From Podarcis liolepis (lineage: Eukaryota), in assembly GCA_965112155.1 (NCBI GenBank), contig OZ218104.1: a stretch of 64,000 nucleotides of DNA; one strand, given 5' to 3'. The notes under the pieces were generated by a model, which saw only the letters and a program-made list of their open reading frames with translations, was not told the origin of the DNA and searched no databases. The position numbers and the translations under genes are program-made. Below, in pieces: positions 45,501-51,724 of this stretch. The stretch's first letter is position 1. The number at the start of each line of letters is the position of its first letter.

Positions 45501-45921
45501 CCCTGCCTGCAGCATGGCCAACAGGTGAGGGATGATGGACGCTGTAGTCCAACAGCATTTGGCCACCCCAACTTCTTAAATAGTATGTGAAATGGAAAAT
45601 GAGAATATAGCACTTGCACTCATTTTCCCACATAATATACTACATCTGAACAAATTTCCACTTAACAGTATTTGAATTCCCCTAACTCTTGAGGAAATAA
45701 GGCTGCCACCGTATGTGTGTGTGTTTGTATGTGTGTGCGCACACTTTTTATGCAATTGGTAACAATTAATACAACCACATTGCAAAAGCTCAAGAAGAAC
45801 ATTTTTCATTTTGTTTTTTGACAAATCCCAAAGGAAAAGAATCATAGAATCATAGAATCATAGAGTTGGAAGAGACCACAAGGGCCATCGAGTCCAACCC
45901 CCTGCCAAGCAGGAAACAGCA

Positions 45922-48837
45922 TCAGAGCACTCCTGACATATGGTTGTCAAGCCTCTGCTTAAAGACCTCCAAAGTAGGAGACTCCACCACACTCCTTGGC
46001 AGCAAATTCCACTGTCGAACAGCTCTTACTGTCAGGAAGTTCTTCCTAATGTTTAGGTGGAATCTTCTTTCTTGTAGTTTGGATCCATTGCTCCGTGTCC
46101 GCTTCTCTGGAGCAGCAGAAAACAACCTTTCTCCTCCTCTATGTGACATCCTTTTATATATTTGAACATGGCTATCATATCACCCCTTAACCTCCTCTTC
46201 TCCAGGCTAAACATGCCCAGCTCCCTTAGCCGTTCCTCATAAGGCATCGTTTCCAGGCCTTTGACCATTTTGGTTGCCCTCCTCTGGACACGTTCCAGTT
46301 TGTCAGTGTCCTTCTTGAATTGTGGTGCCCAGAACTGGACACAGTACTCCAGGTGTGGTCTGACCAGAGCAGAATACAGTGGCACTATTACTTCCCTTGA
46401 TCTAGATGCTATACTCCTATTGATGCAGCCCAGAATTGCATTGGCTTTTTTAGCTGCCGCGTCACACTGTTGGCTCATGTCAAGTTTGTGGTCAACCAAG
46501 ACTCCTAGATCCTTTTCACATGTACTGCTCTCAAGCCAGGTGTCCCCCATCTTGTATTTGTGCCTCTCATTTTTTTTGCCCAAGTGCAATACTTTACATT
46601 TCTCCCTGTTAAAATTCATCTTGTTTGTTTTTGCCCAGTTCTCTAATCTGTCAAGGTCGTTTTGAAGTGTGATCCTGTCCTCTGGGGTGTTAGCCACCCC
46701 TCCCAGTTTGGTGTCATCTGCAAATTTGATCAGGATGCCCTTGAGTCCATCATCCAAGTCGTTGATAAAGATGTTGAATAAGACCGGGCCCAAGACAGAA
46801 CCCTGTGGCACCCCACTAGTCACTCTTCTCCAGGATGAAGAGGAACCATTGATGAGCACCCTTTGGGTTTGGTCAGTCAGCCAGTTACAAATCCACTGAG
46901 TGGTAGCATAGTCAAGACCGCATTTTACCAGCTTCTTTACAAGAATATCATGGGGCACCTTGTCAAATGCCTTGCTGAAATCAAGGTAGGCTACATCCAC
47001 TGCATTCCCTTCATCTACCAGGCTTGTAATTCTGTCAAAAAACGAGATCAGGTTAGTCTGACATGACTTATTTTTCAGAAATCCATGCTGACTCTTGGTG
47101 ATCACAGCATTCCTTTCTAGGTGCTCACAGACTGCTTAATGATCTGCTCCAGAATCTTCCCTGCTATTGATGTCAGACTGACTGGGCGGTAATTATTTGG
47201 GTCCTCTCTTTTCCCCTTTTTGAAAATAGGGACAACATTTGCCCTCCTCCAGTCTGCCGGGACTTCGCCTGTTCTCCAGGAATTCTCAAAGATGACTGCC
47301 AGTGGTTCTGAGATCACATCTGCCAGTTCTTTTAATACTCTTGGATGCAGTTCATCTGGCCCTGGAGACTTGAATACATCTAAACTAGCCAAATATTCTT
47401 GTACTATCTCCTTAGTTATTCTGGGCTGTGTTTCCTTTGCTGAATCATTTGCTCCAAATTCTTCAGGTCGGGCATTGTTTTCTTTATCGGAGAAGACTGA
47501 GGCAAAGAAGGCATTGAGGAGTTCAGCCCTTTCTGTGTCCCCTGTTTGCATTTCACCATCTTCTCCTCTGAGTGACCCCACTGTTTCTTTGTTCTTCCTT
47601 TTGCTACGAACATACCCATAAAAGCCTTTTTTGTTGCTTTTAACCTCTCTAGCAAGCCTGAGTTCATTCTGTGCTTTAGCTTTTCTGACTTTGTGTCTAC
47701 ACGTGCTGGCTATTTGTTTGAATTCCTCTTTGGTGGTTTCCCCCCTTTTCCATTTTTTGTACACATCCTTTTTTAATCTTAACTCAGTTAAAAGTTCTTT
47801 AGATAGCCACCGTGGCTTCTTTAAGCACCTTCCATGTTTCCGTCTCATTGGTATTGCCTGACGTTGTGCTTTTACTATCTCCCTCTTAACAAACTCCCAG
47901 CCATCATGAACTCCCTTTCCTTTTAGTATTACTGTCCATGGGATCTCACCCAGCACTTCCCTAAGTTTTATGAAGTCGGCTTTCTTAAAGTCAAGAAATT
48001 GAGTCCTAGTATGCTTGGCTGCTCCTTTCCGCTGTATAGTAAACTTCAGAAGAGCATGATCACTCGCGCCTAATGATCCTTCCACTTCTACCCCACTAAC
48101 CAGGTCATCAACATTGGTTAGGACCAGATCTAAAATGGCTGTTCCTCTTGTTGCTTCTCCCACTTTCTGGACAATGAAGTTGTCTGCAAGGCCAGTGAGG
48201 AATCTGTTTGACCTTAAGCTCTTGGCTGAGTTTGAATTCCAACAAATATCCGGGTAATTGAAGTCCCCCATTACTACTATCTCCCTTCCTTTTGCATGCT
48301 TGGCCATCTGTTCCAGGAAGGCATCATCTATGTCCTCCGTTTGGCTTGGGGATCTATAGTAAACTCCCACAATGAGGTCTCTGTTATTCTTCTCTCCCTT
48401 AATTTTGACCCAAATGCTCTCACTTTGGCTTTGAGGTTCTAAATCTTGGATCTCTTCACAGGTATACACATCCCTGACATATAACGCCACTCCTCCTCCT
48501 TTCTTGTCTGGTCTGTTTCTCTGAAATAGATTGTATCCCAATCGTGGGACTTATCCCACCAGGTTTCAGTGATGCCTATTATGTCATATTTAGTTTGCTG
48601 TACCAAGAGCTCAAGCTCATCTTGTTTATTTCCCATGCTTTGTGCATTAGTGTACAGACATTGAAGTCCATTAATCATTCCCCCGTGTCTCTTATTTAAG
48701 GATTTTTTCCTCCCACCACTAGGTCCACGTGCTGTTTGCTCCATTTGGTCTATGACATTTGGATGATCATCTTCATTAATTGATAGACTCCTACCTTCAG
48801 GAGCACTGTCTCCCTCCCCCACATTAGTCAGTTTAAA
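45922..48837 (-). pseudogene. CR1 ORF2 (APE endonuclease plus reverse transcriptase) broken by three frameshifts
   Basis: Four ORF-track segments join across frameshifts near 48541, 47130 and 46135; ends HMSGVL*. Confidence 0.93.
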
Positions 48838-49760
48838 GCCCTCCTGATGAGGTTTCTGAGATTTTTGGCAAAAACATTTCTCCCAACCGTTGTGAGGTGC
48901 AGCCCATCACTTGCCAGAAGTCCATCTTCAAGAAACTGCAGTCCATGATCTAAGAATCCAAACCGTTCCTGTTTACACCATTTGCGAAGCCAGCTGTTCA
49001 CTTCCACTATTTTCCCCTCTCTCCCTGGGCCACGTCGTTCAACTGGGAGGACAGACAAGATGACAATTTGTGCATTTAGTTGCTTCAATTTCCTGCCGAG
49101 AGCCTCGTAGTCTCTTTTGATCTTCTGGAGGCTATTGCTTGCAGTGTCATTGGTTCCCACATGAACCAAGAGGAAGGGGTATTTGTCAGTGGGTTTTATG
49201 ATTCCTTGCAGTCGTTCAGTTACATCTTGGATCTTAGCCCCGGGGAGACAGCACACTTCCCGAGACATCTTGTCAGGCCCACAGATCACTGCTTCTGTTC
49301 CCCTCAGTAGGGAATCCCCTATCACCACTACACGCCTCCTCTTGGGTTTGGTCGGGGTTCTTCCGTGAGCTGTCCGTTCCAAGGTCGCCTGCACATTCCC
49401 TGAGGACTGACTTTGCTGCTCGTCTTCATATACCTGATCGACTGTAATGAGGGAGAGATCCTCAAATGGAGTCTGCTCTTCATCTTCCATGCTAGGGGAG
49501 AGGACCTCAAAGCGATTGTGTATTTCTAAACAATCAGAGTGAACCCTGGGCCTCCTACTTCTTTGAGTCACGTTTCTCCATATATCTGGCTCCTGTGTTG
49601 GTGAACTATCCTCCTTCTCAGGGGAGTCCCCTGTCTCCTCCTTGGTGGGGACGGTGTGCTCTGTTGCTTCCAAGAAGAGCTCCAGCTCTCTAATTCTTTG
49701 GAGCGTAGCTACATGTTCCTCCAGTTGCTGGACTTTGTCTTTTAAAAGGGCAATCAACAT
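48828..49760 (-). CDS. CR1 ORF1 remainder: coiled coil plus SGNH/GDSL esterase domain, N-terminus missing
   Basis: 310 open codons; blocks IGDSLLR, LPGA, HVGTND and DGLHL match the SGNH catalytic blocks; ends RRALN*. Confidence 0.9.
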   Translation of the reverse strand: MLIALLKDKVQQLEEHVATLQRIRELELFLEATEHTVPTKEETGDSPEKEDSSPTQEPDIWRNVTQRSRRPRVHSDCLEIHNRFEVLSPSMEDEEQTPFEDLSLITVDQVYEDEQQSQSSGNVQATLERTAHGRTPTKPKRRRVVVIGDSLLRGTEAVICGPDKMSREVCCLPGAKIQDVTERLQGIIKPTDKYPFLLVHVGTNDTASNSLQKIKRDYEALGRKLKQLNAQIVILSVLPVERRGPGREGKIVEVNSWLRKWCKQERFGFLDHGLQFLEDGLLASDGLHLTTVGRNVFAKNLRNLIRRALN

Positions 49761-51724
49761 GCAATGACAACTTCTTAATTTAGCAAAAGGGAGCTTTTAG
49801 GTACCGCCCCAAAGGCAGTATTTAATATTTCCCCATCGAACTTGGCAAAGAAAACATTCCAAATTACAGTAATGCAATAAAGAAAAAAATGACTTCTAAA
49901 AAACAAACAAGCTCAAGACCTATTTGCATTATGAAAGAAGATGCTGATTTGGAGACACTGACTTCATTGGTATCACACCCCTTAAAATATTAAAGACTGC
50001 AATGTTAGAACCAAGACCACTAACTACCACAAGCTTACCGAATGAATTCAAAACTCCAGTCTCTACCAACAGCTTCCATTGTCCAATAAATCCAAAATTC
50101 CATCAGAATGGCTCAACTGCAACCAGAAATTCAACATGAAAGGGAGCCAAATTCACTTTGGGTTCACTCAAACACACTGTTCATATTATTCCAATTACTA
50201 GAGAGCTCTGAAGGACACACAGGTGTCTAAATTTCACAGTCCTTAAACAAGCTTGACAGCTTTCATCTTTCAATGCCAGGAAGTGACAGTCAAACACAGA
50301 CAGAATAAGGTTGTGCCAATAAGTATTCAGACTGGTTGGCTGAATTCATGCACTCTGCTTCATTAAGAAAAAAATAGAATAAACCCAACAGAACTGCTAG
50401 GTCTGAACATGAACTATGGTCAGTCACAGTTTGCAAGATACACTAATGATTAAAATCAAATCAGTCAATTTTAATGTCCCAACTATTTCAACTTGATTTG
50501 AAATCTTATTTGACAATTTCACGGCTGGCTTTTAAATCCAACTCTGTTTATGATTTTCTTCCCCTCCCCCTGCCACCCCCAAATCAAGGGTGTTACTTCT
50601 CCCTGCCCCCACCTTTTTATTTCACTTTTAGGCACTTTTTCAACAGTACCTTCCTCCAGATACCTGGTTTTTAAAAGAATAATATCCCTCAAAACCAGAT
50701 ATCTGGAGGAAGGTACTGTTGAAGAAGTGCCAAAATTCGTTTGGCAGCTGTGAGCCCATAACTAAACAGGAAATAGAAAGACTTCCCCAAATCTACTGGA
50801 GGGGTAATATATGCCAAACAAAATCATACCCACAAGACTTTAATGAAAGTAGAGAATACAAAGTTTTAGTTTTAGTTTTAGTTTTAGTTTCTGGGAACAC
50901 ATCTGGGAGGCAGAATGCACAGCACAGACCAACTTTCCCTAACTTGGTTTGCTCCAGATGTTTTGCTGCAACTCCCATCAGCCCAAGATGGGAGTCATAG
51001 ATCAACATCAGAGGGTGGGCATCAAGTTGGGGAAAGGCTTGCATAGGCAGATGTAGCTAACTTCACTAGGTCAAGGAATAAAATGGTGGATGGCAAGCAA
51101 TGTGCAAAAAATAATAATAATTAAACAAGCCAAAGTCTTCAAAACAGGGAACTAATCCAACCTTAAACAAGTAAGTTCAGGCTTATGTGGAACTTCCTAA
51201 AGATCTGAAAATTGAGCCAAAAACCACAGAAACATAGTAGACGGGAAAGGGCAGTGATGCAGAAGCCAGGTGACAGAGCTATCTAGGAGCATCTAAAAGC
51301 AAAAGGCAACCGGACAAAACAGCATGTTTTTGGAGGGAAGCATATTAACCATAGTTTGCACCAGTCTGCACACAACTGAAATAATTCCTAATGTAAGGAA
51401 CACAATGAAAAGATGAGAAAGGAGTGATCATGCATTCACAAGACTGTCCCTCTTTGCAAACCATAGTTTCCTAGCAGTCTCCAATATACCTGGCACCAGG
51501 TTTTCCCTCTATTACTTATGCAGGCAGTGATCATTTTGCACATGTCCGTATTGACGTACCCACACCGGCAGGGGCAGGGCAGGCTGACGTATGACCGCTA
51601 ACGTGCGAATGACCTAGAACACAACCCCCGTGCAAATGGGGAGCTTCCTGTACCAATATGACTCCAATTCAATGTTTTCACGATTGGGTCCAAGAAGCTT
51701 TCGAATATGAGAATAATAAACAAA

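Follow-up and report, generated by a model that had tools for sequence, protein, structure and literature searches.

A conserved slippery heptamer at the ORF1/ORF2 junction of CR1 retrotransposons as a candidate signal for programmed -1 frameshifting

We analyzed a window of 64,000 nucleotides (nt) of Podarcis liolepis contig OZ218104.1 (assembly GCA_965112155.1), whose minus strand carries a copy of a CR1 retrotransposon, a long interspersed nuclear element (LINE) with two open reading frames (ORFs). ORF1, which encodes an esterase-type protein, ends in AGG GCT TTA AAC TGA, where the slippery heptamer T_TTA_AAC (48831..48837, minus strand) lies in the X_XXY_YYZ phase of ORF1 and directly abuts the TGA stop (48828..48830, minus strand, from reading of the sequence). 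The heptamer is invariant in 13 of 13 sequence groups of related junctions, and ORF2 lies in the -1 frame. We judge it probable, with a chance of roughly three in four, that CR1 elements of this lizard family, of birds and of turtles express ORF2 by programmed -1 frameshifting, as an ORF1p-ORF2p fusion. The Gag-Pol-like fusion suggested in an earlier note on this DNA is consistent with every sequence-level prediction that we could check, i.e., a fixed heptamer, ORF2 in -1, an open frame and the existence of AUG-less lineages. Because slippage is deduced from sequence, and because no canonical downstream RNA structure was found, the mechanism itself is one that we infer.

The heptamer at the end of ORF1

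Re-reading the junction bears out most of what the earlier note had described, including the codons that end ORF1, the in-phase heptamer abutting the stop, and a -1 slip that leads without a stop into the ORF2 frame. Between 48906, which lies 23 codons ahead of the heptamer, and 48439 the -1 frame has no stop. At the heptamer it translates as ...EG FKL TNVGEGD..., and it is stop-free to the first endonuclease motif, CLYTNAQS, with the catalytic Asn (48637..48660, minus strand, by translation). The ATG just past the ORF1 stop, at 48824, is in the ORF1 frame and closes early, as claimed; it stands two codons past the stop and, by translation, opens a 0-frame ORF of 24 codons (48750..48824, minus strand), which is not the ORF2 frame. 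The first -1-frame ATG, placed about 30 codons on, lies 31 codons after the heptamer in the lizard copy, and a GTG stands at +8. The distance given for the G-rich tract, about 8 nt, has to be corrected: this tract, GGGGGAGGGAGA (48809..48820, minus strand), starts exactly 10 nt after the heptamer, at 48820. It is a candidate linear stimulator, a possible determinant of the peptide GEGD, or both. The 21-nt junction occurs once in the window, where 0 occurrences are expected, and a chance origin appears untenable given the comparative conservation described next. Of the features by which a -1 signal is canonically tested, the phase of the heptamer, a -1 ORF open across the shift site and synonymous conservation are present.

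Junction DNA of relatives was collected by a scan of metagenome contigs with ORF1 alignment, which gave 80 loci; most of these trace to one host-contaminated sample, with three further samples supplying a few. Scans of genome-contig and viral-contig collections found no relatives. The ORF1s of these metagenome loci are closest to crane and other bird proteins, with up to 76% identity to Grus, and the lizard and bird-type ORF1 proteins are 33-52% identical in the best tblastn segment. Grouping 57 bird-type junctions together with the lizard junction at 72% identity produced 13 groups. In all 13, CTTTAAAC is invariant, whereas of the 28 preceding columns only 2 are. Over the 57 junctions, ORF1 closes with GCT (51 of 51 Ala codons), TTA (56 of 57) and AAC (51 of 53), and the codon preceding TTA ends in T in every copy. 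This T is kept even where residue -3 has changed: the codon is ACT in L059, TCT in L014, L015 and L064, and GAT in L025. The stop that follows the heptamer is TAG in 46 relatives, TGA in 10 and TAA in 1.

The 27 codons before the last three behave differently. Conserved Leu positions there use 3-6 synonyms, and conserved Ala and Gly positions vary too. Among ten representative lineages, about half of the codons for identical residues match, whereas the last three always match. In these ORF1s, TTA accounts for 10% of Leu codons, AAC for 45% of Asn codons and NNT for 23% of all codons, so that NNT-TTA-AAC would be expected in about 1% of unconstrained lineages. The fixation of GCT-TTA-AAC at synonymous positions, which had been proposed as a check, is thus seen in the junction alignment, in CR1 lineages that diverged deeply. 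The loss of the heptamer through synonymous changes had been named beforehand as grounds for rejecting the idea, and no such loss was found.

It might be argued that the heptamer and the -1 arrangement have no function and were inherited by descent, through too little divergence or by chance. Most of the DNA junctions do come from a single host-contaminated metagenome, and copies of a subfamily are recent relatives. However, the lizard and bird-type ORF1s have diverged to the low identities given above, synonymous sites elsewhere differ about as much as codon bias allows, and both the length and the sequence of the linker that follows the heptamer differ by group. In addition, the Leu-Asn (LN) end of ORF1 is kept from rays to birds amid varying neighbors. 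We therefore regard the absence of function as very improbable.

Proteins extend the range of hosts. A word-index search with ORF1 yielded 197 relatives in lizards, a snake, many turtles, an alligator, birds, frogs (Dendrobates, Ranitomeya and Xenopus) and cartilaginous fishes (Narcine, Pristis and Stegostoma). An exact LN end was found in 90 of the 120 relatives listed, from squamates, turtles, birds, frogs and rays. Four further relatives have ...ALN followed by read-through, and the remainder are truncated or spliced models or variants with a single substitution. The earlier note had suggested that bird and turtle ORF1s also end in RALN*, and the ends of these proteins confirm it. In an alignment of 18 sequences, L309 and N310 are invariant despite varied preceding residues (RRALN, KRALN, EEYLN, EECLN, GEDLN, RCGLN and EQLLN). 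Residue -3 among the LN-ending relatives is A in 64, T in 9, G in 5, Y in 4, C in 2, S in 2, L in 1, D in 1 and E in 2. It can be encoded by NNT in 88 of the 90, E being the sole exception.

Several CR1 ORF1 esterases carry misleading names in the databases (P0045, P0080, P0057, P0051 and P0028). One is called 'SGNH/GDSL hydrolase family protein [Klebsiella pneumoniae]', likely through host contamination of a bacterial assembly, and names used in Varanus include 'Replicase polyprotein 1a', 'Beta-parvin' and 'HAUS augmin-like complex subunit 7', among others.

Sequences resembling the junction occur in two further contexts. One bird-type copy (L003:3490-3545) has a tandem duplication of the junction (..TTTAAACTGAAGGA TTTTAAACTGAAGG..), with two units of heptamer and stop in a row. 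In bird and crocodilian CR1, ORF2 has a C-terminal motif ..NGFKLK.. whose coding sequence, GGCTTTAAACTAA, is shared letter for letter, over 11 letters, with the ORF1/ORF2 junction (PMC4316615 supplement). This unrelated GFKL motif near the 3' end of ORF2 was the only match to the junction sequence in the supplement of Suh 2014 (PMC4316615). At the homologous place the lizard copy reads GSKLQE, and the likeness to the junction is probably a coincidence.

Reading frame and translation of ORF2

Under programmed frameshifting, a ribosome ending ORF1 would have its P site occupied by tRNA-Leu, paired with UUA, and its A site by tRNA-Asn, paired with AAC. A small share of the ribosomes would slip one base back, to UUU and AAA, so bypassing the abutting stop, and would then read the -1 frame through a linker of 35-93 codons into the APE endonuclease and the reverse transcriptase. 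The product would be an ORF1p(esterase)-linker-ORF2p fusion with the junction ...ALN-L..., predicted as ...RRALN-LTNVGEGD... for the lizard family, where the transframe tryptic peptide would be ALNLTNVGEGDSAPEGR. Most ribosomes would terminate and yield ORF1p alone, the slip rate setting an excess of ORF1p over ORF2p like that of Gag over Gag-Pol. The conserved G tract 10 nt downstream, and not an RNA helix, may help slippage; weak structure would be compatible with a low slip rate, which is all that a LINE needs.

The arrangement of frames in relatives fits this proposal. Every group has the motif C[LVI]YTNA[RH]S in the -1 frame, with 0 stops between it and the heptamer, the exceptions being single decayed copies. 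In none of the lineages did ORF2 prove to lie in frame 0 or +1. The turtle model P0033 (Natator) seemed to have ORF2 in +1 (FTGGRRPKPEV), but this is explained by a loss of 1 nt in a decayed copy, which converges with P0121 at PEV; the in-frame fusion P0084 is a decayed copy whose stop has mutated. The linker from heptamer to motif measures 35, 62, 74 or 93 codons depending on the group, and 59 in the lizard. In the commonest bird group a TGA stands in the -1 frame two codons before the heptamer, so that a productive shift is confined to about 10 nt, i.e., to the heptamer itself.

A second word-index search, with the linker and APE part of a turtle fusion model, gave further indications from proteins. 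In bird gene models (Mycteria, Theristicus, Grus and Limosa), ...[GS]FKL..KGEGD... shares its frame with CLYTNARS, and its FKL is what a -1 reading of the heptamer yields. Among turtle proteins, P0121, an ORF2 model of Lepidochelys, has ...SPGEGDQSPEV... continuous with YLKCLYTNAQS, and the Caretta ORF1 read-through P0019 has ALN-K-VHQGKETRA in frame 0. A single DNA could encode both peptides only if ORF2 is offset by -1, so the turtle ORF2 would also lie in -1.

The main competing explanation is that ORF2 is translated separately, by termination-reinitiation like that of SART1 or by AUG-independent reinitiation like that of L1, ribosomes resuming in the -1 frame close to the stop. In that case the heptamer would be kept for other causes, e.g., as a reinitiation-promoting sequence or for the C-terminus of ORF1p. 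Both precedents are established (SART1, PMC3708506; L1, PMC5009743). Like CR1, L1 with its unconventional reinitiation and SART1 with its UAAUG stop-start coupling are LINEs with bicistronic RNAs that need little ORF2p, and their translation of ORF2 is coupled to the end of ORF1, as in our reading of CR1 (PMC3708506, PMC5009743). In contrast to CR1, they make a separate ORF2p and have neither a conserved slippery heptamer nor a fixed -1 relation.

Some features of the junction suit a restart. The -1-frame codon just 5' of the G tract (window 48821-48823) is usually NTG: it is ATG in L015, L048 and L063, GTG in the lizard and in group D, and TTG in some copies of groups A and B. In many lineages an ATG also precedes YTNA by 15-30 codons, and a start there would produce an N-terminus resembling the one of the L1 endonuclease. 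The folds described below contain no strong downstream structure. However, the NTG codon is not conserved, being TCG in the commonest bird group, with TGG and GGG also occurring, and the position of the ATG varies between lineages. We did not find a conserved ORF2 start codon overlapping or near the ORF1 stop in these junctions, and the nearby ATG of the window is in frame 0. As an observation on its own, the NTG codon may be a relic of an ORF2 start or an alternative to one.

The copies without a start codon are more difficult to reconcile with reinitiation. The -1 linker is open in 31 copies, and in 12 of them no ATG precedes YTNA; every open copy with a 62-codon linker is among the 12, as is one of the two in the 74-codon-linker group, the other having a single ATG at codon 3. 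YTNA holds the catalytic Asn of APE-type endonucleases, and a start at the Met just after it would therefore lose this residue. Yet in the ATG-less copies of these two groups the -1 frame is open for 62-74 codons from the heptamer. Reinitiation likewise leaves unexplained why the heptamer has fixed third-codon bases, T, A and C, amid variation at other synonymous sites, and why T is retained where residue -3 has changed. For these reasons we consider reinitiation unlikely, but a serious contender.

We also compared the window with the lizard family as a whole, by aligning Logan contigs of three organisms and raw RNA-seq reads of a fourth, related organism to positions 48300-49300. The family is very high-copy by this alignment. 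Neither contigs nor RNA reads have a substitution at >=10% of family copies within 48807-48866, or an indel at >=10% between 48538 and the heptamer. The only indel reported there is one of 16 nt at 48537/48538, carried by the family and missing from the window copy. Because the family has no indel between the heptamer and 48538, the -1 relation of ORF1 and endonuclease holds for the family.

The RNA reads also bear on whether transcriptional slippage or RNA editing at TTTAAA might set the frame of ORF2 on some transcripts. The short T3A3 run is all that speaks for this idea, and runs of three are far shorter than known slippage-prone homopolymers. RNA-seq reads cover the junction on both strands, with 13-37 per bin; those that cross it have no indel at TTTAAA, and at a depth of about 30-50 reads no inserted or deleted letter reaches >=10%. 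We consider this explanation extremely improbable. A separate observation concerns the origin of the reads: 44% of the material aligned to 48300-49300 continues into unlike sequence, which suggests that many RNA reads derive from copies embedded in other transcripts and not from element-driven transcription.

Sequence downstream of the heptamer

The sole conserved feature downstream of the heptamer is the G-rich tract, which reads GGGGGAAGGGGA in most bird groups and GGGGGAGGGAGA in the lizard. The first run of at least three G begins at exactly +10 nt from the heptamer in 48 of 58 copies, columns G26-28 and G30 of alignment A3 are invariant, and a tract of this kind at 10-11 nt is implied by the turtle peptides. 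Its translation in the -1 frame is G-E-G-D in most groups. For group C the peptide is instead GGEG, GGRL or GGGG, and because the peptide varies there while the position of the G run is kept, a constraint on the tract at the level of RNA is favored, although this is no proof.

Two candidate structures were considered and rejected. A G-quadruplex is not supported, as no copy has a three-tier motif, and the two-tier motif that begins 2 nt after the heptamer in many bird copies is absent in the lizard. Some bird groups have a hairpin of 7-9 bp about 27 nt after the heptamer (L008:3924-3948, also L015, L019, L048 and L004), exemplified in group B by CCAGGCT..11 nt..AGCCTGG. As a common stimulator it was rejected, given that it is absent from group C and from the lizard and imperfect in the commonest group.

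It is important to set out the points that weigh against frameshifting. The 100 nt downstream of the heptamer have no unusual fold in seven lineages (z-scores from +1.1 to -1.4, with a tool that does not model pseudoknots), and RNAalifold on 14 junctions gave 0 pairs, pseudoknots being outside its reach. The stimulatory stem-loop or pseudoknot that canonically lies 5-9 nt downstream therefore does not appear in these folds. The G tract, at 10 nt, exceeds the usual 5-9 nt, and its conservation could be at the level of the peptide GEGD. Independent initiation of ORF2 is possible in many lineages, because a -1-frame ATG, GTG or TTG follows soon after the stop; thus the ERZ-derived groups have an ATG two codons past the stop, and the lizard has its GTG at +8 and its ATG 31 codons on. 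Since CR1 lacks a protease of its own, a fusion would need to function in unprocessed form. Finally, the evidence at the level of DNA comes from lizard and bird-type hosts, with turtles represented by proteins, and frogs and rays by the LN end alone.

A broader and more speculative version of the frameshifting proposal is that U_UUA_AAC, the stop, 10 nt and the G tract together form an ancient recoding signal of all esterase-ORF1 CR1 elements, from cartilaginous fishes and frogs to birds, stimulated by a factor that acts on the linear G tract, i.e., a host G-tract-binding protein or ORF1p. The invariant LN end suggests the reach from cartilaginous fishes to birds. We hold this version to be doubtful. 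If it is true, the ratio of ORF1p to ORF2p would be self-regulated, with one fusion molecule per ORF1p multimer. There is an analogy, and purely an analogy, with sites stimulated by proteins: as generally known, the C-rich motif of arterivirus nsp2TF and the 2A-bound stem-loop of cardioviruses lie 10-14 nt downstream. By the same general knowledge and again as pure analogy, the stimulator of porcine reproductive and respiratory syndrome virus (PRRSV) is linear and unstructured, matching the CR1 G tract in position and linearity. The CR1 motif differs in being G-rich and not C-rich, and any CR1 factor is hypothetical.

The window copy, comparable systems and implications

The copy in the window is, on the evidence of its Pfam domains, its 3' microsatellite and the identity of its ORF1 to Podarcis muralis proteins, a CR1 LINE of a lacertid lizard genome. 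The features that define the CR1 clade are present: an esterase-type ORF1, an ORF2 with APE and reverse transcriptase, and an 8-nt 3' microsatellite in place of poly(A). By tblastn, Pfam and reading of the 3' end, the 5'-truncated and decayed copy spans 45838..49766 on the minus strand, the strand of all the parts that follow, and consists of an ORF1 remnant, four ORF2 pieces and the microsatellite. The ORF1 remnant (48831..49766) comprises a coiled-coil region and an SGNH/GDSL esterase (PF13472 at 4.5e-10), ends in ...IRRALN, and is 95-96% identical to Podarcis muralis SGNH hydrolase proteins. The ORF listing has a 310-codon minus-strand ORF at 49760..48828 and, after it, three or four shorter ones whose frames differ. 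Because the tblastn match begins at residue 49 of the Podarcis protein (window 49766), the copy is 5'-truncated and the 'ATG' at 49760 is an internal Met.

ORF2 is distributed over four pieces. Piece 1 (48439..48906, by frame reading) is the stretch open in the -1 frame; it overlaps ORF1 by 23 codons, continues through the linker and takes in the N-terminal part of the endonuclease. Piece 2 (47117..48541; PF14529, PF03372) holds the remaining APE endonuclease and the region up to the reverse transcriptase, which forms piece 3 (46053..47105; PF00078 at 3.5e-27). Piece 4 (45922..46149, from the ORF listing) is the C-terminal CR1 domain, in yet another frame. At the 3' end, reading of the sequence identifies the 8-nt microsatellite (ATGATTCT)n, typical of amniote CR1 (45838..45864). 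Since the four pieces are in different frames, the window copy has at least three frame breaks. The alignment of reads and contigs shows that the first of these is a private 16-nt loss (48537..48538): the absent sequence, CCTCCATTATTACATT on the plus strand, is present in family RNA reads and contig ends, and its 16 nt exactly restore one frame between the pieces at 48906..48439 and 48541..47117. The window copy is dead, and the candidate frameshift signal is a property of its family.

Among the closest counterparts of the junction is the ORF1a/1b site of coronaviruses and arteriviruses: the heptamer, U_UUA_AAC, and its phase are identical, and the ORF that follows, also in the -1 frame, contains a polymerase. 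At the viral sites a pseudoknot lies at 5-7 nt and the 0-frame stop further on (general knowledge, PMC5009743), whereas CR1, a cellular LINE and not an RNA virus, has no detectable structure, an abutting stop and a G tract at 10 nt. CR1 resembles the Gag-Pol of retroviruses and long terminal repeat (LTR) elements in that an ORF for a nucleic-acid-binding or structural protein is joined to a -1 reverse transcriptase ORF at a heptanucleotide, with an excess of the first protein (PMC5009743). It differs in being a non-LTR element without a protease, whose fusion would be unprocessed, and in an ORF1 of esterase type and not Gag. In sites of luteovirus and dianthovirus type the heptamer directly abuts the stop of the upstream ORF, as in CR1; however, as is also general knowledge, their heptamer is GGGUUUU or GGAUUUU, and adjacent and long-range RNA structures are needed.

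In a full-text search of the literature, which did not reach the founding CR1 papers, we found no paper in which a slippery heptamer is connected with CR1 or with any non-LTR element of two ORFs. A review from 2016 on frameshifting covers LTR elements, HeT-A, TART and L1, but not CR1 (PMC5009743). The terms frameshift, overlap, slippery and stop codon are absent from a 2026 survey of the CR1 group in 101 vertebrates (PMC13343379), and Suh 2014 describes CR1 merely as having 'two ORFs'.

It is an old question by what means ORF2 of a bicistronic LINE RNA is translated, and L1 and SART1 answer it differently. Birds, crocodilians, turtles and many squamates have CR1 as their dominant retrotransposon. 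If programmed frameshifting is true, CR1 would have a Gag-Pol-like expression strategy with an unprocessed esterase-APE-RT fusion (RT, reverse transcriptase), which would explain both the rarity of ORF2p and its tethering to ORF1p and its RNA. Annotation would be corrected, given that present gene models start ORF2 at an arbitrary internal Met or invent introns that span the junction. The presence of the heptamer together with ORF2 in the -1 frame would become a new criterion for the intactness of CR1 copies, and the signal would be among the oldest conserved frameshift signals in vertebrate genomes.

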